IMG/VR virus record: IMGVR_UViG_3300043411_000942
Location: 1-64,000 of that record
Strand: one strand, 5' to 3'
Length of the DNA: 64,000 bases
Positions 3,540 through 56,408 of this stretch are shown piece by piece (within the stretch, counting starts at the first letter, position 1; each line of letters begins with the position of its first letter). A program made the position numbers and the translations under genes. Under the pieces are notes generated by a model, which had not been told where the DNA came from, searched no databases, and was given only the letters and a program-made list of their open reading frames with translations.

Positions 3540-4073
3540 ATGACGCAAGTTACAAGATTCAGAGATATTCCACCCTACACTAAGAGCCCACCCTACACTG
3601 TGAATGTAGGGTTGGGTTACTTGGTGGCACACTATACCATGTGTGTAACCGAGTGGGGTCTGGACGTGTCCCCAGACTTCCAGAGGGCTTACGTCTGGAC
3701 GGCTAATCAGAAAGTCAGTTTCGTGGAGTACTTCCTACGTGGAGGGTCCTCTGGAGTGGACATCTATACGAACTGTCCTACTTGGAATTCCATGGTACCC
3801 CCATTGGACCCCAAGTCATGGTTCGTTCTTGTCGATGGGAAGCAGCGACTTGACGCATTGCTCGGGTTTCTTAACAACGAGTTCCAAGTGTTCGGGGGAA
3901 GCTACTTTCGAGACTCACCAATGATGAGGCAAGTTGACCACACAACTGGTAAGATTATCTACCGTCGAGACTCGATTACTGAGAAACTAATAGCTAATCG
4001 TGTGAATCAAGCAGTTACAAATGCTTGGAAAGGGGTGGCTCCAATCAAAGAGAGCCCCCGAATCCTCCATTGA
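3540..4073 (+). CDS. DUF262 (ParB/Srx-like, GmrSD N-terminal) domain protein
   Basis: PDFQRAYVW and VDGKQRL signature motifs. Confidence 0.8.
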   Translation: MTQVTRFRDIPPYTKSPPYTVNVGLGYLVAHYTMCVTEWGLDVSPDFQRAYVWTANQKVSFVEYFLRGGSSGVDIYTNCPTWNSMVPPLDPKSWFVLVDGKQRLDALLGFLNNEFQVFGGSYFRDSPMMRQVDHTTGKIIYRRDSITEKLIANRVNQAVTNAWKGVAPIKESPRILH

Positions 4074-4148
4074 GGAGTTTGCCAATTCTGGTGGCTACTT
4101 TGATGCTTTTGGGGTATACGCTGGTCAACCCAAAACCAAGAGGCACAG

Positions 4149-5366
4149 ATGCTAAGTGAACTTGAGATTCAGCTAGTAACCAAGTATATCTTGAGCCTCG
4201 ATGAGCGATCAGACCGCTATGGGGATGAGTTGGTAGACCACGTACTCCATCGCGTATCCTATCTCAACTATGATGATGGGGTCGATTGGGACACCTATGG
4301 AGCTATCTGCTCGTTTAGGGATGCGTTTGAAGATGAAGCACGAGTGGCCTTTGTTGAGAGAGTCCTCCAAGGAGATAGCCCACAAGTAAGTGCCAAACAA
4401 CCCGATGCCCCATGTCACATTCTGGCTGCGAGTCAATTTGACATCAAGACTATCGACCTCGTATTCAAAAGGGCTCAGGAAATAGAGCATTCGACAACTG
4501 AGAGACTTCTACACAAGCTACAGGGTAAGACCTTGGCTTGCGTTTTCTATGAGCCGTCTACCCGAACATCCTCCAGCTTCATTGCTGCAATGGGTAAGCT
4601 TGGTGGGAACGTGATACCCATCACACAAGGGGTCCAGTACTCAAGTGTTTCCAAGGGTGAGTCGCTAGAAGATACGATCGTCACCTTGGGTCAATATGCA
4701 GATGCAATTGTTCTTCGTCATCCTACGGTAGGGGCTTCAGCTCTTGCGGCTAGCGTTAGTCCCGTGCCAATCATCAATGCAGGGGATGGTATTAGTGAGC
4801 ACCCCACGCAAGCTCTTCTAGACCTCTACACGATCCAAAGAGAATTTGGGCGTACCTCCAACCTTAAGGTAGCCTTTGTAGGGGACCTTGCGAATGGACG
4901 GACGATCCACAGCTTAGCTGCACTCTTAGCGCTCTACCCAGGAAATGAGTTCTCCCTGGTATCCCCATTCCTACTGAAGCTAAGTCATGATTCGGCTCCT
5001 TACCTGCGAATCAAAGACAAGGTAACCCATGAGATTCACGTAAAGGATAGCCTGGTAAAGGCTGAGGAGGTCTTGGCAGAGGCAGACGTGGTCTACATGA
5101 CGCGAATCCAGAGAGAGCGGTTCGGGTTCCTAGAGAACTACTCTGAGGTAAAGGACTCCTGCATCCTCACGGAGGAGCTAGTAAGGAAGCTCAAGCCCTC
5201 GGCACGTATTCTACACCCCCTCCCGCGAGTCAACGAGATTCCAAGGGAGATCGACTCTGACCCTAGAGCGGCCTACTTCCGAGAGGTCAAAATGGGGCTT
5301 TACGTGAGGATGGCCCTCCTAGACCTAACAATGGGGTCTACCTCCCCTTGGCTACCCAACCTATAA
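4149..5366 (+). CDS. pyrB: Aspartate carbamoyltransferase catalytic subunit with an N-terminal extension of about 85 aa
   Basis: FYEPSTRT, SKGESLEDT, LRHP, INAGDG..EHPTQALLD, GDLANGRT, YMTRIQRER and HPLPR motifs. Confidence 0.96.
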   Translation: MLSELEIQLVTKYILSLDERSDRYGDELVDHVLHRVSYLNYDDGVDWDTYGAICSFRDAFEDEARVAFVERVLQGDSPQVSAKQPDAPCHILAASQFDIKTIDLVFKRAQEIEHSTTERLLHKLQGKTLACVFYEPSTRTSSSFIAAMGKLGGNVIPITQGVQYSSVSKGESLEDTIVTLGQYADAIVLRHPTVGASALAASVSPVPIINAGDGISEHPTQALLDLYTIQREFGRTSNLKVAFVGDLANGRTIHSLAALLALYPGNEFSLVSPFLLKLSHDSAPYLRIKDKVTHEIHVKDSLVKAEEVLAEADVVYMTRIQRERFGFLENYSEVKDSCILTEELVRKLKPSARILHPLPRVNEIPREIDSDPRAAYFREVKMGLYVRMALLDLTMGSTSPWLPNL

Positions 5367-50700: not shown

Positions 50701-53700
50701 CTCCAAGTCCGCTAGCTACCCCTCAAAGACCACTGAACTCACGGTTCTGCGAAAGTTTCCGTCCGCATTTACCTGGGGACGGATCGTGGCCTTCCATGAT
50801 CTGGGTCCCTACACGATCGCAGGGTTCCACCCTATCTCCTACACTGGGGAAAGCAAAACCAAGCATCTGGACGTCACGGAGTATCATGTGTGGGTGGACG
50901 GTAAGGATACCTGTACGGGAGCTAAGAGCTTGGAGGAAGCCATCCTGCTTGGGATTGGCATCCGCAACCTGGGTGCAAACAGTGGCCCCCACATGGCACG
51001 AGCTGCCTTCAAGATCCTTCAGTGACCCCCTACCAAAGGGTTTGCGAGCTGCACTTCAAGTTTCTTGAAGACGTTCACACCCTTCTCGTAACTGAGGCGG
51101 GAGCAGACCCAGACTCCAAGCAAACCTTTATGAGGTACATGCTGGACCCTACAGGGAACCAGGTAAAGGAGTACCGCTTCAAAGGGGCGTTTAGAGGCGG
51201 TGGTAAGCTCTGGATGGACAACAGTAAGTTCTGGATGGGCAACTCCCCCTACTGGGTCTCCTGCTACCCCGAGCACTACGCAGAGCTTGGTGCTCGTGTG
51301 GTCTACCTCAACGAAAAGATTGAGGCCCTCTACCTAGCGTATGCAACCAAGAGCCGAGAGCTAGTCCCATGAACAAAGCACGTCGTAGACTCGCCCGAGC
51401 ACGTAGGTACCGAGACCGGGCTTACATTCCACAAGGCTGGACCATGGGTGGAATGAGCCCAGAGTTCCCAACGAAGACGGAAGAGCAGGTAGCTCGATTC
51501 GTGGCGGAAGTCACGAGGCGAGCACGGAAGAACAAGGTCCTTGTTATCACTTGGAACGACCGCATGGTGCAAGACCTTCGGCGTCTCCTCCCCACAGACC
51601 TGACCACGGCATGGGATGTGGCGCTCCATGTGAAAGTAGTTTCCCTGTGGGATGCCTTTCACCAGAGCAATCTGGCCCTCAACTTTCGCGGGCACATCAC
51701 TGCCTTTCCTGCCTCTAACTTCAAGCTGAGAGCTTAAGCAGCTCTCGTCTCTTTCCGTAGGGTTCAACATGTACGAAGATTCCAGGCGACCTCAAGAGGT
51801 CAAAGCCTACACGAAGGAGATTCTTGCTCCTCTGATGTATGAAGCCTACATTAGCACCGCCTACAGTAGCACCGAGGGCAATTGGCCCGACTGGTCGGGC
51901 CTTCCTGAGGGTGTAAGGAAGTTTTGGCTGCTCAAAGCAAACAAGTCGATAATGTTCCTTGCGCTGAGTGGCACGAGTATCACGGACTCGGAGAAGCACG
52001 TAGCACTTCTAGCCTACCTCCTGTGGGATGGTAGCCTGTGGGAGGGCAGTGGCATTGATGCTTGGATGGCAGTGGCCAGACTTGTTCTAGCTAAGTTGAA
52101 AGGAGCCTAATCATGGACCCCAAGAACAGAGAGCACCTGAGAGCCCGTCTACTTCAAAAGAATCTCCCTAGCCTGACGGGCACCTGGGTCATTCGTGGGG
52201 AGGACGACAACGCAGACCTGGCTGGTCCTCACTATACGCCGAAACTTGGCAAGGTGAGGGGGACCTATGCGCAAGCAGTGGACTACGCCCTGTCCATTCC
52301 TAGCTTCGTTTCATGGGGTAGAGGGGGTTCGATCGACCTTGACCAAGAGGAGGAAGTCATTGACCTCGACAACCTTCAGGAAGCCCTTCGAGAGAAGCTC
52401 TTTCTTGAGCGTGACGCCCTGAACAGGCGCATCGACGAGATTGAGAATACCCTTCGGGCTATGCCACGAAAGGGGTAACAAGTGATTGAACCACAAGAGA
52501 ACGAAGAGGAAGCACTCGCTCTTGCCCTTCGACTTGGGCTTGAAGAGTGTGAGCGTCTGAGGGCCAAGTGTCAGGTGCTTGAAGACCGACTAGATTATCA
52601 AGACCAGCTTCGGTGGTTGGGAAGGGAACCTGTATGAGCGGTGTAGTTTACTTCAAGGACCGTACGGGGTACATCCGTAAGCTTCCTGCGGACGCCCCTG
52701 CTCGCTACAAGGGTAGTGGGGATATGTTCCTGGTAGGCGCTGCTAGCACGACGGATGTTCTAATACAGGTCTATGACAATGGGTGGATCGAGGGGTCTGT
52801 TATTGGACCCCCAACCCGCTATGTCTTCGAGCTAGTGTGGGAGTCCTGGGAAGGCGAGCAAGACCTCCGCTCTGCTCTCCTTGCATCGATAAAGTCCTCG
52901 GAGGTAGCCACCAAGCCGATCTTGACCCGAGTCTACCCGGTCTGCGACTCGACGAAGGCTGTAGTGACCCGATCTTGTAAGCTTTGACCTAGGCTCCTGG
53001 AAGAGTAAAGCCATGAATACACTTCAAGAACAACTTGCCCACCTACGCTCATTGAAGGACGGGTGGGATGAGGACCCCAGGGAGCGAGAACCCGCTCCAG
53101 CACCTACCCCAAAGGTCATCGAGGATGCTGAGCGGGTAGCTCTAGCCCTTGAGGCCTCAGGCTTCACGGATGTCACGCTCAGTGCTGACGTCATGGGTGG
53201 CGTTTGGCTGGGTGTGAGCCGAGGGTGGATTATCTTCCGCAACAAAGGCACGAGAATTGCCTTGGGTAAGGGATTTTGAACCTCAAGATCCTACAAATTC
53301 AAGTCTTGGTTAGGCCCCACCATCCCGACCTCGTAAGCTTTGACCTAGACGACGAGGTATCTAGCCCATTTCCTGTCTTTGGGGACCGAGCTTCTGTCTC
53401 GACTCTCGTTCAGGCAGGTTATGGGTTGGGTTCAGGAAAACTTCCCTGGGGTTCCTGTCCTTGTTGAAGAACACTCCCAGCTTGGCTCGAAAGAATCTGG
53501 TTAAAGGTTGACCCCGAGGTTACGTAGGATAGAATGAGGGTGAGACGAAGAGAACCTCTTCAATCTGCCCAACCTCCTCAGCTGGACCTAATCAACCTAG
53601 CTGAAAGCACTCGACGAGATGAGGGAGAAGTGATTAACTCTCTTGGCAAGCTTGGCGTAACCTTCTGGCGTAACCCGGAAAAGCTAGGCAAAAAAGCCCC

Positions 53701-53719
53701 TACGTGTCGCCTAATATAG
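47704..53719 (+). CDS. Array of about 18 short hypothetical (probably early) genes with interspersed promoters at 48679, 49010, 50658, 51734 and 53501
   Basis: Coupled short ORFs; no recognisable families. Confidence 0.6.
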
Positions 53720-53858
53720 GCTCTCTAGGTTCTCTCGGGTGTGAGTTTGGGCAGACTTAAGAGGCTCTCGGAAGAGACCCAAAGAAAAAACGTAGAAGAC
53801 GCAAAATAAGTTAAGAGTGATGAAGCTCTTGGCGTAATGAGAATCAAGGAGACTGAAA

Positions 53859-54329
53859 ATGACGATGACAAAGGAAGAGTTGCTCGCGTGTATTGAGAAG
53901 AAGGTCACTGACCTTGCCACTATCGCTGCCGGGAAGGCACGGTTGGAGGGGCAGGAGAGGGCCTTCATTGCTGAGCTGCTTGCGGCTCATGGGAAGGGAC
54001 CCCACATGGTGCTGGGTAAGCCCAAGTTCATCTTCACCAGCAAGACAGGTAACGTCTACATCTCTGACCCTCGCGGTACCATGAAGGGTGTCAAGCGAGG
54101 CCCCCGTAAGCCCAAGGTGGCTCCTCCGGTGGAGACGGTGGCTGAGGTTCCGATGGCTGCGGCTGTTACCGCCTCGGCTGAGGAGGAGGCTCCTGAGGCT
54201 CCTGAGGATGAGGCTCCTGAGTCGGGTGGCTTCACGGCTGAGCAGCTGGCGGACAAGCCAGAGGATGCCTTTGAGGGCTCGGAGGATGAGGATGATGAGG
54301 ATCCTCTCGCTGGACTGGACCTCGACTGA
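53859..54329 (+). CDS. Protein with a basic KRGPRKPK segment and a very acidic C-terminal tail; possible nucleoid-associated protein
   Basis: Promoter at 53811-53836, AAGGAG SD, strongly biased codons (GAG/GCT/AAG). Confidence 0.7.
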   Translation: MTMTKEELLACIEKKVTDLATIAAGKARLEGQERAFIAELLAAHGKGPHMVLGKPKFIFTSKTGNVYISDPRGTMKGVKRGPRKPKVAPPVETVAEVPMAAAVTASAEEEAPEAPEDEAPESGGFTAEQLADKPEDAFEGSEDEDDEDPLAGLDLD

Positions 54330-54336
54330 GATGACT

Positions 54337-54372
54337 GGGGTGTAGGAGAGCTGGAACTCTCTCCTACACCCC
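54337..54372 (+). other. Strong hairpin without a U-tract (processing/stabilising site or weak terminator)
   Basis: ggggtgtaggagag...ctctcctacacccc. Confidence 0.65.
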
Positions 54373-54479
54373 CTTAGAGGGCAGAAGACTGAGCACACTG
54401 CATGGTGACCTAGGAGAGCTAGGTACGGCTTGTTGTGTGGCCTGTGAAACACAGTGCGCTCATTCTCCTGCCCTCTAAG
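54373..54479 (+). ncRNA. Unrecognised structured RNA motif, copy 1
   Basis: Closing stem of about 25 bp around the core ATGGTG-[acctag GAGAG ctaggt]-ACGGC-N10-GCC-TGTGAAACA. Strand inferred from flanking genes. Confidence 0.7.
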
Positions 54480-54493
54480 AAAGACCCGATTAT

Positions 54494-54577
54494 GCCGAAT
54501 CGCGAGGCCGCAAGGCCGTAAGGGCGACCCTCAGATGGCCAAGAGGGGATCAGGTTCAAGCCCTGGATTCGGCGCCT
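54494..54577 (+). ncRNA. Non-canonical tRNA-like element
   Basis: 7-bp acceptor stem GCCGAAT/ATTCGGC; T-arm TCAGG-TTCAAGC-CCTGG; stem CCCTC/GAGGG with a 10-nt loop; atypical D region (GGCC-GCAA-GGCC). Confidence 0.7.
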
Positions 54578-54587
54578 ATTACACTCA

Positions 54588-54685
54588 GGAGTAAAAGATT
54601 GAGCCTATTGAATGGTGTCCTGGGAGACCCAGGGACGGCGCATGTATGTCCGCTCATGAAACACAATAGGCTCGTTCTTTTGCCC
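54588..54685 (+). ncRNA. Unrecognised structured RNA motif, copy 2
   Basis: Closing stem of about 20 bp around the core ATGGTG-[tcctgg GAGAC ccaggg]-ACGGC-N12-GCT-CATGAAACA. Confidence 0.7.
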
Positions 54686-54852
54686 CTCAGGAGGCCCCAA
54701 TGCTCTGCGGTTACTGCCTAGGTCATTCAGTACGCTGAGGACACGGCCTACGCCCACGTCGCTCTAGCGGCCTCATGAAGTGTACACCGTACTCTTCCAA
54801 GAAGTATTCGCTAGGATCGTCAACGCCACCCAACTGTACTACTGAGTAACCC

Positions 54853-55026
54853 ATGTTCAAGCTAATTCTACGCCCACGATACGACTCCGACAACACCTAC
54901 CCGAGCGATATCACCATCCTCCAGACAGAGGACGGTCACTTGTCGATTGACTTGGGCGATCGAAGGATTGAGGTAGACAAGAACGACATTAGCAAGCTCA
55001 GTAAGTTGCTTGACTTGAGTCAATAG
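54853..55026 (+). CDS. 57-aa hypothetical protein (below the ORF-track cutoff)
   Basis: MFKLILRPRYDSDNTYPSDITILQTEDGHLSIDLGDRRIEVDKNDISKLSKLLDLSQ. Confidence 0.5.
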   Translation: MFKLILRPRYDSDNTYPSDITILQTEDGHLSIDLGDRRIEVDKNDISKLSKLLDLSQ

Positions 55027-55029
55027 CCC

Positions 55030-55240
55030 TTAAGGGTTAGCCCTGAGCGTACGTAGTAGAGTGTGGGTCACCTGAGACGTGACCCCTCTAAAACCGCGTG
55101 ATTATCTTTTCGATTACCGGTAAGAGCCCAAAACCGCGTATTCAGTTAGCGTATGGTCATGGTGCGGCGGTAAACCCCAAACTAAAGACTATCCAAGACA
55201 GACTATCCAAGACAGACTAGACTACCCAAGACTACCCCTC
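55030..55240 (+). repeat. Promoter motif followed by a non-coding hairpin and AAAACCGCGT / AGACTA(T/C)CCAAGAC repeats
   Basis: TTAA 55030, CGTA 55052, hairpin gggtcac-ctgagac-gtgaccc from 55065; repeats at about 55090, 55130 and 55185-55238. Confidence 0.65.
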
Positions 55241-56408
55241 TTCAACGACCCAAAATCCCTTTCCTACAGCAACGACCAGGGTCAGAAAATTTCTAGGGGA
55301 AATTTTTTGAGGGCCCAGAAAACTCAAAGAGCATGGCAACGAGTTTCCGATTCACTGCAACTGCAAATCGAAATGGCATGGGGGCCAAGAACCCTGGGGT
55401 ATACAACACCTGCACCTGCCACCCGATACAGTGGGGGGCTAAGAAGGCAGCCCGTCGAGCCCGGAGACGGATCTCCAAGCAAGTCATCCTAGAGGGGTGT
55501 GGAGAGTTGACATGAGGGGGCTGACTGCGATGGAGAGTGAAGTGCTTTCTGAAGACTCGCGAATCGAGGATGACGTCTACCTCAATCTTCTCGCAGAGCC
55601 GCTAGACCCGTCCGGTGGCGGCAACATGTCGAGCGAGATCGCAGCAACGCGTGAGAGGCTTACCGTGCGCGGTTGCCTGGAGCTATTTGTGTTTACCTAC
55701 TCAGACGGATCTGACGACTCGACTTGGCGCATCACCTCTCGTGGCCGTCTCGCTCTCCTTTGCCACCAGGCCCTGAAATGAACTACCTCGAAAAGTTGAA
55801 CGTACGGCTGGATGAGGCTCACTACGTGAGTTGCCCACAAGACTTCAAGGGTGACTTGCTACGAGCTTACGAAGTAGCTGACAACCCCAAGGCTGAGGCA
55901 GCGTTTTTCATCGCGTGCCATCATATGGCTTTGTTGGGAGGGCACAAGGACGTAGCCGTGCTCTTTGCGGATCTTGTGACCCTGATTAAGTAGATGAGGA
56001 AGCCCAAGCCACGTAAGAACAGAGCATACAGACGCAGAGGCAAGCGTGCGTGGTACGCCGCGATGAAAGCCACCGGGGAGTACCTGCACAGGAAGATGAG
56101 GGAGCCGAGCATCACACGCAGTATGTTCTCGATAACCCAGGTGACAGAAGTGGAGGCTACTCGATGACTACTTGGAAGACGACATGGTTGGCCAGGCTAC
56201 ACGTTCGGTTCCGTAAGTGGTTGCTGCCGAGGCTGCACCATCCCATCTGCCCCTTGTACCGGTACGAGTTCATCCGGATGCTAGAGCTATTCCACCATCG
56301 TAAGCCGCACACGCGATCCGCCCTGTGGGGTATGGAGGCTCAGTGTTTTTGTCCCAGAGCACTGAAGTAGTAGTTAAGTCTCCAGGCTCAAGCTACGTAG
56401 GACTCTAC

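Follow-up and report, generated by a model that had tools for sequence, protein, structure and literature searches.

The closest described systems to the RNA reported here are the hammerhead ribozymes of prophages (types I-III), which are small three-stem junctions with invariant junction bases and a probable stem-loop docking contact. They lie between the genes of phage operons with no constant gene partner and are sometimes multiple or tandem (PMC3088659). Theta (minimal HDV-like) ribozymes are phage RNA modules that are placed directly beside tRNA genes, where cutting would mature the tRNA (PMC10879173). The putL and putR antiterminator RNAs of HK022 are phage-encoded, protein-independent structured RNAs made of two hairpins with conserved unpaired bases, present as two similar copies per genome. 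RNase III processing stems, such as the T7 R sites and the stems of rRNA operons, are long duplexes that can bracket stable RNAs. Bacterial 5S rRNA loop E is a symmetric 7x7 non-canonical internal loop, and the Mycobacterium sRNA Ms_IGR-2 (Rfam RF02467) is the only Rfam model that aligns to a typical member of the family described below.

Here, a 64,000-nt stretch of the IMG/VR virus record IMGVR_UViG_3300043411_000942 (positions 1-64,000; referred to as the window) was analysed. In a 520-nt non-coding spacer of this jumbo-phage contig, two copies of a Y-shaped RNA with a three-way junction bracket a degenerate tRNA-like element. Like the hammerheads, the motif has three stems, invariant junction bases and a probable docking contact, and type II hammerheads occur in the same operons, but its core is AUGGUG/AC/UGAAACA rather than CUGANGA/GAAA/UH, its junction strands are arranged differently, with only 2 nt linking P2 to P3, and no hammerhead model matches. 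Like the theta ribozymes, it can abut tRNAs, but it has no nested double pseudoknot, gives no HDV-family model hit and is near a tRNA in only 5 of 122 copies. Like the put RNAs it occurs here as two similar copies, but there is no sequence or structure match in HK022 and the motif trails genes and does not appear to follow early promoters. In the window each unit closes with an imperfect duplex of RNase III length, whereas in the family it is the junction core, not the duplex, that is conserved. The inferred junction helix resembles loop E in being a symmetric run of non-Watson-Crick pairs with central purine-purine pairs, and one strand (AUGGU) resembles the loop E strand GAUGGUA; the opposite strand differs and there is no 5S model hit, and we regard this resemblance as a lead only. 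Ms_IGR-2 shares a hairpin followed by ACGGGUU and ending in UGAAA, but its second hairpin is mismatched and it has no GAGA loop.

Identification and anatomy of the two units

The coordinates of the features are given in Table 1. An earlier note, made from the sequence alone, had described twin copies of an unrecognised structured RNA motif with covarying stems and invariant junctions flanking a tRNA-like element, and this observation was confirmed. Both units lie where the note had placed them, and only the outer limits of unit 2 move slightly from the 54588-54685 given there.

Table 1. Features in and around the non-coding spacer of the window. Two ranges separated by 'with' are the paired strands of a stem.
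Feature	Position	Strand	Description
Upstream ORF	53859-54329		Stop codon directly before the hairpin
Hairpin	54337-54372	+	Strong 14-bp hairpin, -27.9 kcal/mol, directly before unit 1; no U-run; not part of the conserved family
Unit 1 (type A)	54373-54479	+	R2 covariance model 81.9 bits, E 1.9e-17; fold z = -7.2
Unit 1 P1	54373-54400 with 54452-54479		25 pairs, two mismatches
Unit 1 J1/2	54401-54407	+	C-AUGGUG; inferred to pair non-canonically with 54445-54451
Unit 1 P2	54408-54413 with 54419-54424		6 bp, loop GAGAG
Unit 1 AC	54425-54426		Links P2 to P3
Unit 1 P3	54427-54429 with 54440-54442		3 bp, 10-nt loop; followed by UG
Unit 1 J3/1	54445-54451	+	UGAAACA
tRNA-like element	54494-54576	+	83 nt; 7-bp acceptor stem, T-arm of 5 bp with loop UUCAAGC, discriminator G followed by CC, long extra arm, aberrant anticodon loop; fold z = -1.3
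Unit 2 (type A)	54584-54690	+	R2 covariance model 78.5 bits, E 1.3e-16; fold z = -4.9
Unit 2 P1	54584-54610 with 54664-54690		24 pairs
Unit 2 junction strand	54611-54617		A-AUGGUG
Unit 2 P2	54618-54623 with 54629-54634		6 bp, loop GAGAC
Unit 2 AC	54635-54636		Links P2 to P3
Unit 2 P3	54637-54640 with 54651-54654		4 bp, 10-nt loop; followed by CA
Unit 2 junction strand	54657-54663		UGAAACA
Remaining spacer	54691-54852	+	Starts with GGAGG; no Rfam hit; not conserved elsewhere
12-codon ORF	54700-54738		Within the remaining spacer
Next ORF	54853-55026	+	

The gapped pattern ATGGTG..ACGG..TGAAACA occurs twice in the window, against 0.00 expected in shuffled sequences. The 371-nt block as a whole folds with z = -7.6. 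The two copies are about 80% identical and show compensatory changes at three positions in P1 and two positions in P2. A scan of the spacer found no promoter or terminator, including at the hairpin that precedes unit 1.

The element between the copies is tRNA-like only below threshold. ARAGORN at default settings found no tRNA or tmRNA gene, and the Rfam tRNA model (RF00005) gave no hit at E<=10. At 80% stringency (-ps80) ARAGORN drew a cloverleaf in which the acceptor stem and T-arm are canonical, with a 7-bp acceptor stem stacked on a 5-bp T-arm with a UUCRANY loop and followed by the discriminator and CC, as can be read directly from the sequence, but in which the anticodon loop is aberrant and is read as '?(Leu|Pro)(ag)'. 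It is therefore not a true tRNA at normal thresholds.

Distribution and covariation of the family

An initial loose pattern scan returned mostly chance hits and was filtered. A strict pattern matched more than 120 IMG/VR contigs, a lower bound, and 53 bacterial contigs from many phyla. The family is mostly phage or prophage borne and is abundant in uncultured phages and prophages of soil and freshwater phyla, including Acidobacteriota, Verrucomicrobiota, Actinomycetota, Bacteroidota and Planctomycetota, as well as in cyanophages and a jumbo phage. The twin noticed in the window is one instance of a widespread single-copy or tandem module. Searches of GenBank phages found no close relatives of the 371-nt block or of 10 kb around it. 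Short-query blastn found the motif only in two Microcystis phage records (Mae-JY24 and Mwe-Yong1318-1, with a type B copy upstream of terS), and further queries found nothing useful.

Across 104 covariance-model hits, 93.8% of pair cells are standard pairs, against 56% in shuffles and about 40% when the partners are slid; all 27 pairs show double changes, and P2 is 99.8% paired. In hits to a pattern that does not demand pairing, 139 of 151 distinct instances have 6/6 P2 pairs, using 75 different P2 sequences. G.U outnumbers A.C by 47 to 5, so the gene-sense strand folds. P2 is always 17 nt, even in a scan that allowed 12-25 nt, and consists of 6 bp with a GNRA-like GAGAN loop. P1 is a closing stem of any sequence and of 4-25 bp, with a median of about 9 bp, and those of the window are the longest of 106 instances. 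P3 is a short stem with a free loop and is unconstrained across the family. About 20 bases are near-invariant.

The two junction strands occur in two forms that never mix in the loci found: AUGGUG with UGAAACA (type A) in more than 120 loci, UAGAG with UUGAACA (type B) in 48 loci and either cross-combination in 0 loci. From this strict covariation the strands are inferred to contact each other and to extend P1 as a non-canonical helix of 6-7 'pairs' (G.U, U.G or A-U, two purine-purine pairs, U-A, and A.C) that exists in two co-varying versions, rather than being single-stranded. The fifth base of the P2 loop is U in 56% of type A and 3% of type B. Together with the fixed length of P2, this suggests that the P2 loop probably docks on the junction helix. 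No pseudoknot or ring was detected, although a pseudoknot between GUUU of the P3 loop and AAAC was considered only without a systematic search.

Genomic context

The motif usually follows a same-strand gene. The nearest large ORF upstream is on the same strand in 132 cases and on the opposite strand in 25, whereas downstream the split is 77 against 73. P1 begins a median 16 nt after the upstream stop codon, and within 10 nt in 38 of 106 instances. Called genes confirm a convergent downstream gene in L212/L325 (L numbers denote individual loci) and a co-oriented downstream gene in L326 and L327. All-against-all clustering of neighbouring ORFs in about 220 loci found no universal neighbour, and no single gene family is associated. 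Downstream genes include DUF3310, helicases and many unknowns, and upstream genes include endolysins, replication initiators and others. PHROG annotation of the window shows mostly unknown genes.

The motif abuts tRNAs in L199, L085, L158 and L161, with real tRNAs within 2-5 nt of P1 in L199 and L085. Of the 11 loci that have any tRNA, five have one within 300 nt of the motif, always on the same strand; the tRNA association holds for only a minority of copies (5 of 122). Adjacent tandem copies occur in L182, L225 and L271. In some loci type II hammerheads lie 0.7-1 kb downstream in the same operon, so that motif and hammerhead flank a small gene block; this is the layout described for prophage hammerheads, where gene identities are not constant (PMC3088659). 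Terminators follow 12 of 106 copies, against 10 of 106 in the upstream control, and are therefore not enriched. In at least 11 loci the complete motif, including P1, sits in frame inside a conserved 320-338 aa ORF, at the same linker position in type A and type B phages.

Comparison with known RNA classes

Searches with Rfam 15 at the gathering score on the whole window, and at E<=10 with relaxed filters on short stretches of the window and of typical members, identified no matching family. The hits were spurious miRNA-precursor matches to the long hairpins and a match of Ms_IGR-2 to a typical member at 17.4 bits (E 0.047), below its gathering score of 45; this model does not hit the window units. 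No Hammerhead_1/II/3/HH9/HH10 hit was obtained on the units at E<=10, although the same search does find true type II hammerheads elsewhere in related loci. A permuted hammerhead was rejected because no CUGANGA is present (PMC10085705). Models of twister, twister-sister, pistol, hatchet, HDV-like and glmS ribozymes likewise gave no hits, nor did those of the common riboswitches to which the earlier note had referred. The R2 covariance model, run with filters off on the whole HK022 genome, gave a best hit of 12.2 bits (E about 1), which does not support similarity to putL or putR.

The units do not fulfil the usual criteria for riboswitches: no expression platform is evident, as terminators are not enriched and the distance to the next start codon ranges from 11 to 401 nt, the downstream gene is often convergent and no single pathway is associated. 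The units also do not fulfil the criteria for a MITE or REP-type repeated DNA element (conserved terminal inverted repeats, many dispersed copies and no strand preference): the outer stems are the least conserved part, only two copies occur in 64 kb and the G.U to A.C asymmetry shows that one strand folds. A short coding ORF starting at AUG-GUG was rejected because the length from AUG to UGA is not a multiple of three across members. With about two turns of duplex (20 bp or more), P1 of the window units fulfils the length requirement of an RNase III substrate, but this is not a property of the family. Full-text literature searches found no description of this motif.

Possible function

The analysis itself establishes that each unit belongs to a previously uncatalogued family of compact, autonomously folding phage and prophage RNAs with a three-way junction, whereas the docking of the P2 loop, the contacts within the junction helix and everything concerning function, including any cleavage, are inferred. 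The interpretation in the earlier note was partly supported: the motif is a genuine structured RNA outside the Rfam 15 families and the classes considered there, but none of the functions proposed (a processing ribozyme or site that releases the tRNA-like RNA, a protein sponge, or a scaffold presenting a variable guide-like loop) is established. Release of the tRNA-like RNA is plausible given the long P1 stems in the window and the real tRNAs beside the motif elsewhere. The guide-like loop receives no support, as the P3 loops have no antisense match in the window beyond chance.

Our preferred, although tentative, explanation is that the motif acts in cis as a transcript-punctuation module tied to the 3' end of the gene in front of it. 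In this view the fold would form just behind the stop codon after transcription and create a defined RNA end. The most likely route would be site-specific cleavage by the RNA itself, making it a candidate new self-cleaving class; alternatively, it may direct or stop a host ribonuclease. The covarying fold with its two exclusive junction types, the position just behind the upstream stop codon, the lack of a constant gene partner, the tRNAs and tandem copies beside the motif, the hammerheads in the same operons and, in the window, the long P1 stems and the lack of a promoter or terminator in the spacer are in its favour. Several observations are at odds with this. The core matches no known ribozyme, and constitutive cleavage of the copies embedded in ORFs would sever that mRNA. 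Many candidate motifs found next to hammerheads and twisters did not cleave when tested, namely ten HRIMA motifs (PMC10085705). Most family members have a P1 of only about 9 bp, so RNase III cannot be the general mechanism, and because a plain hairpin would be enough to block exonucleases, a passive barrier role does not explain the elaborate conserved fold. In the window, cutting at or in the two units would separate the upstream mRNA, the tRNA-like RNA and the downstream mRNA. A bolder form of this idea, in which the motif is a new class of small self-cleaving ribozyme with two natural core variants, used by phages alongside hammerheads to cut polycistronic transcripts just behind a cistron and to release adjacent tRNA or tRNA-like RNAs, is not excluded but is rather unlikely on present evidence.

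The next best alternative, which we consider unlikely, is a stable trans-acting small RNA that is trimmed out of the transcript, as a tRNA is, and acts as a decoy, sponge or cofactor for a highly conserved host component such as a ribosomal protein, RNA polymerase, an RNase or a defence protein, with the conserved junction and GAGA loop as the recognition surface. The compact, self-contained fold is conserved across phyla with no conserved neighbouring protein. It sits inside or beside tRNA clusters, where RNase P or Z cuts would release it, tandem copies exist, and in the window it shares a non-coding 'stable RNA' spacer with a tRNA-like element. However, most copies have no promoter or terminator of their own, their position is tied to the upstream stop codon, some lie inside an ORF and no partner has been identified.

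Less likely still is an exonuclease-resistant 3' cap, in which the tertiary fold would block 3'-5' (or RNase J 5'-3') decay and stabilize the adjacent cistron, analogous in logic to the tandem xrRNAs of flaviviruses or the RNase III-processed hairpins of T7. The location immediately 3' of stop codons, at operon ends and between genes, the tandem duplication and the compact junction with its inferred docked loop are consistent with this. However, several copies are followed by a normal terminator hairpin that would already protect the 3' end, no pseudoknot or ring was found and no bacterial precedent for a complex-fold barrier is known to us.

A co-transcriptional regulator that binds RNA polymerase or the ribosome, either a put-like processive antiterminator or a terminator-proximal element using the SD-like GGAG at the tip of P2, appears improbable. 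A universal partner would explain the conservation across phyla, the twin copies recall putL and putR, some copies precede terminators and function inside an ORF would be tolerated. Against this stand the lack of a match in HK022, the apparent lack of a consistent position downstream of a promoter and the many copies at the very end of a transcription unit before a convergent gene.

A riboswitch-like aptamer for a ubiquitous small molecule or ion is more doubtful again. The highly conserved junction pocket, the two discrete variants, which would then be two ligand specificities, and the tandem arrangements would suit it, but it conflicts with the missing expression platform, the inconsistent downstream genes and the frequent convergent gene noted above. 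Least likely is a single-stranded DNA structure of the sense strand, such as a priming or initiation signal: neighbouring genes are often replication genes (DnaB-type helicases, replication initiators, SSB, RecT and exonuclease), embedding in an ORF linker recalls lambda ori inside gene O and G.T pairs are also tolerated in DNA hairpins, but the co-orientation with the upstream gene, the same-strand tRNA genes, and the GNRA-type loop and purine-purine junction, which are typical RNA tertiary modules, argue against it.

Implications

Few widespread, strongly covarying RNA folds remain without a family assignment. The present family shows a rare kind of evidence, two mutually exclusive junction versions that point to a defined tertiary core, and provides a small, well defined object of 55-60 nt for biochemical and structural work as well as a marker for annotating phage operon boundaries. 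If it cleaves itself, it would be a new natural ribozyme class. If it blocks or recruits a nuclease, or binds a universal host machine, it would be a new way for phages to punctuate their transcripts.

Architecture of the two units

The two units lie in a 520-nt non-coding spacer between two ORFs of the + strand, together with a strong hairpin, a tRNA-like element located between them and about 160 nt of sequence at the 3′ end of the spacer to which no feature was assigned. The coordinates of these and of the other features discussed here are given in the first table, in which loci carrying the motif are designated by L followed by a number. The units align at about 80% identity and share one architecture, consisting of a long closing stem (P1), a junction strand (C/A)AUGGUG, a 6-bp hairpin (P2) with the loop GAGAG or GAGAC, the dinucleotide AC, a short stem (P3) with a 10-nt loop of unrelated sequence, two free bases, UGAAACA and finally the return strand of P1. 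Three fully compensatory changes in P1 and two double changes in P2 distinguish the copies. The gapped core pattern occurs twice in the window, against 0.00 expected, and the units fold with z values of −7.2 and −4.9. The description in the earlier note, namely twin structured units with covarying stems and identical junction segments flanking a tRNA-like element, is accurate.

Coordinates of the features in the window and in related loci
Sequence	Feature	Coordinates	Strand
Window	Upstream ORF (156 aa)	53859-54329	+
Window	Non-coding spacer	54330-54852	
Window	14-bp hairpin	54337-54372	
Window	Unit 1	54373-54479	
Window	tRNA-like element	54494-54576	
Window	Unit 2	54584-54690	
Window	GGAGG	54690-54694	
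Window	12-codon ORF	54700-54738	
Window	Downstream ORF	54853-55026	+
L081	Type A motif	1378-1439	
L081	ORF containing the motif	681-1697	
L294	Type B motif	2222-2278	
L294	ORF containing the motif	1542-2504	
L131	Type II hammerhead	4348-4406	same as motif
L164	Type II hammerhead	803-859	same as motif
L127	Type II hammerhead	1805-1863	same as motif
L155	Type II hammerhead	1871-1932	same as motif
L204	Type II hammerhead	2725-2787	same as motif
L136	Type II hammerheads	4465-4523 and 4756-4814	same as motif
L131	Repeated hairpin	3686-3702 and 4104-4122	
L267	Identical 89-nt motif copies	797-885	−
L267	Identical 89-nt motif copies	2184-2272	+
L212	Match to Ms_IGR-2	473-546	

Distribution and covariation

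A loose pattern scan of IMG/VR returned mostly noise, but also a set of hits with perfect P2 hairpins and complementary flanks. A stricter pattern of 21 fixed bases, in which no pairing was required, matched at least 120 loci in IMG/VR and 53 contigs among one genome per bacterial species, including Acidobacteriota, Verrucomicrobiota, Actinomycetota, Bacteroidota, Planctomycetota, Alphaproteobacteria, Myxococcota and Nitrospira. The IMG/VR hits include the source record itself (IMGVR_UViG_3300043411_000942; 232,937 bp), a jumbo phage, which carries both units with identical flanks. A covariance model built from the two units (R1) recovered 104 hits, across which 93.8% of pair cells are standard pairs, compared with 56.2% in column shuffles and 39-46% when the partners are slid. 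All 27 pairs show changes on both sides, and P2 is 99.8% paired. An alignment-independent check agrees with this result: among 151 distinct pattern hits, 139 have 6/6 P2 pairs, made from 75 different P2 sequences, and G.U pairs outnumber A.C mismatches 47 to 5, which identifies the folding strand as the one presented here. In a scan that allowed 12-25 nt for P2, every hit with a real hairpin had exactly 17 nt. A rebuilt model (R2) finds exactly two copies in the 64-kb window, at an E value of about 1e-17. The twin units are thus members of a family and not merely a local twin.

Two versions of the junction

Copies that were found by the model but not by the pattern showed a second version of the junction, (A)AUAGAG with UUGAACA (type B; the version in the window is type A). 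Three further scans of IMG/VR were performed, and the loci found for each combination of junction strands are listed in the second table.

IMG/VR loci found for each combination of junction strands
J1/2 strand	J3/1 strand	Loci
AUGGUG	UGAAACA	at least 120
UAGAG	UUGAACA	48
AUGGUG	UUGAACA	0
UAGAG	UGAAACA	0

The two junction strands therefore covary as a unit. Written antiparallel, they form a continuation of P1 in which the pairs, from the junction outward, are G.U, U.G (A-U in type B), G.A (which becomes G.G), G.A (which becomes A.A), U-A and A.C. This register is inferred from the sequences; the switch from U.G to A-U is a classical compensatory change. The fifth base of the P2 loop also tracks the junction type, being U in 84 of 151 type A copies and in 1 of 32 type B copies. 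Combined with the fixed length of P2, this suggests that the GNRA-like GAGA loop docks on the non-canonical helix, although this is an inference and shared ancestry could contribute to the correlation. Both types can occur in one phage, for example in locus L193 and in loci L170 and L316, which lie on one contig.

Comparison with known RNA families

No family in Rfam 15 matches the motif, either at the gathering scores or at E ≤ 10 with relaxed filters, and this holds for the window units as well as for typical short-stem members. The only alignments obtained were spurious miRNA-hairpin matches to the long P1 and, for a typical member (L212), a weak sub-threshold match to the Mycobacterium sRNA Ms_IGR-2 (17.4 bits against a gathering score of 45; E = 0.047). 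Both have a hairpin followed by ACGGGUU and a 3′ UGAAA, and a distant relationship is not excluded. The hammerhead, twister, twister-sister, pistol, hatchet, HDV-like and tRNA models do not match the units, whereas the same searches do find genuine tRNAs and type II hammerheads in neighbouring sequence. The genome of HK022, the home of the put antiterminator RNAs, contains no match. The hammerhead block-permutation scheme of Eckert et al. (PMC10085705) does not apply because no CUGANGA is present. Full-text literature searches found no description of the motif, although unpublished or unindexed descriptions cannot be excluded. Among cultured phages it was found only in Microcystis phages Mae-JY24 and Mwe-Yong1318-1, where a type B copy lies in the spacer upstream of a hypothetical gene, terS, terL and portal.

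Genomic context

No neighbouring gene is universal. In one subfamily of 32 loci the motif follows an endolysin-like gene and precedes DUF3310 and an exonuclease; elsewhere, the upstream genes are replication initiators, SSB or genes without an assigned function, and the downstream genes are helicases or likewise unassigned. The constant feature is the upstream side. The nearest large ORF upstream is on the strand of the motif in 132 cases and on the opposite strand in 25, whereas downstream the split is 77 against 73. P1 starts a median of 16 nt after the upstream stop codon, and within 10 nt of it in 38 of 106 instances. Called genes confirm both layouts: in L325 (the contig of L212) the order is gene, motif, terminator and convergent genes, whereas in L326 and L327 the order is gene, motif and co-oriented gene. 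In the group of loci represented by L037, a strong sigma-70-like promoter follows the motif. Intrinsic terminators are not enriched downstream (12 of 106, against 10 of 106 upstream) and the distance to the next start codon ranges from 11 to 401 nt, which rules out a riboswitch-type platform.

Of the 11 loci that contain any tRNA, five have one within 300 nt of the motif, always on the same strand, and in L199 and L085 only 2-5 nt separate P1 from the tRNA. Directly adjacent tandem copies occur in L182, L225 (Terriglobus albidus) and L271. In L267, an Acidobacteriaceae MAG contig, the two identical copies lie in inverted orientation about 1.3 kb apart and may be part of a larger inverted repeat. 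In the DUF3310 subfamily, one or two type II hammerheads (Rfam RF02276) lie 0.7-1 kb downstream on the same strand, such that motif and hammerhead flank a small gene block containing DUF3310; of the hammerheads listed in the first table, all but that of L164 reach the gathering score. Perreault et al. (PMC3088659) described this arrangement for prophage hammerheads, noting that the identities of the flanked genes are not constant. A repeated hairpin, GCCAAGCGGG(C/G)TTGG(C), sits shortly before the start codons of successive small genes in the DUF3310-type phages (e.g. L131), and similar sequences appear in many related loci.

Copies embedded in coding sequence

In at least 11 loci the whole motif, P1 included, lies in frame inside a conserved ORF of 320-338 aa without an assigned function. 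L081, L183 and L147 carry type A, whereas L294 and its relatives carry type B. The L081 and L294 proteins are 53% identical, the motif sits at the same linker position in both, and amino-acid conservation resumes after the motif. The fold is therefore selected at the nucleic-acid level even inside coding sequence. A constitutively self-cleaving element at this position would cut its own mRNA.

Features of the window

The two units have the longest P1 stems of 106 distinct type A instances (24 and 25 pairs, against a median of about 9), which are long enough for RNase III. No promoter or terminator is predicted in the region 53700-55300, so that the block is probably co-transcribed with the flanking + strand genes. 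The very stable hairpin that immediately follows the stop codon of the upstream ORF touches unit 1 and has no U-run, and is thus not a classical terminator. The protein encoded by the upstream ORF ends in a strongly acidic, low-complexity tail (EEEAPEAPEDEAPE...EDEDDEDPLAGLDLD) and has no PHROG hit. The element between the units has a canonical acceptor stem, T-arm, discriminator and CC, but fails tRNA detection because of its D region and anticodon loop, and its fold is not unusually stable (z = −1.3). The sequence GGAGG begins at the last paired base of P1 of unit 2 and is followed after 5 nt by the short ORF MLCGYCLGHSVR, which may be fortuitous. The P3 loops, for which a guide-like role had been proposed in the earlier note, have no complementary sites in the window beyond chance. 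The window as a whole has no detectable tRNA gene and very few annotatable proteins (a DNA helicase, a nucleoside deoxyribosyltransferase and an SbcC-like protein among 54 ORFs of 130 aa or more), which fits a poorly known jumbo phage.

Interpretation

The analysis itself establishes a new, widespread and strongly covarying RNA fold with a defined tertiary core, folding in the gene sense and attached to the 3′ side of genes; that it punctuates transcripts, and any cleavage in or at the motif, is inferred from sequence and context. The interpretation put forward in the earlier note, that of a new phage RNA class acting as a processing element, a protein sponge or a guide-like scaffold, is thus only partly supported. 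As far as Rfam 15 and the searchable literature show, the family is undescribed, and it failed every test of membership in a known class that could be run; we therefore regard it as a new class of structured RNA.

Among the possible functions we rank site-specific cleavage first, either self-cleavage or nuclease-directed, on the basis of the hammerhead-like genomic behaviour, the abutment of tRNAs, the tandem copies, a size and conservation typical of small ribozymes and the absence of any partner gene. This assignment remains tentative in view of the ORF-embedded copies and of the record of candidates found next to known ribozymes that did not cleave. Less likely, in decreasing order, are a released trans-acting RNA or decoy, an exonuclease barrier, an element binding RNA polymerase or the ribosome, and a ligand sensor. 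A single-stranded DNA signal near replication genes is the least likely. For this window, the most economical reading is that cuts at the two long-stem units would separate the upstream mRNA, the tRNA-like RNA and the downstream mRNA.
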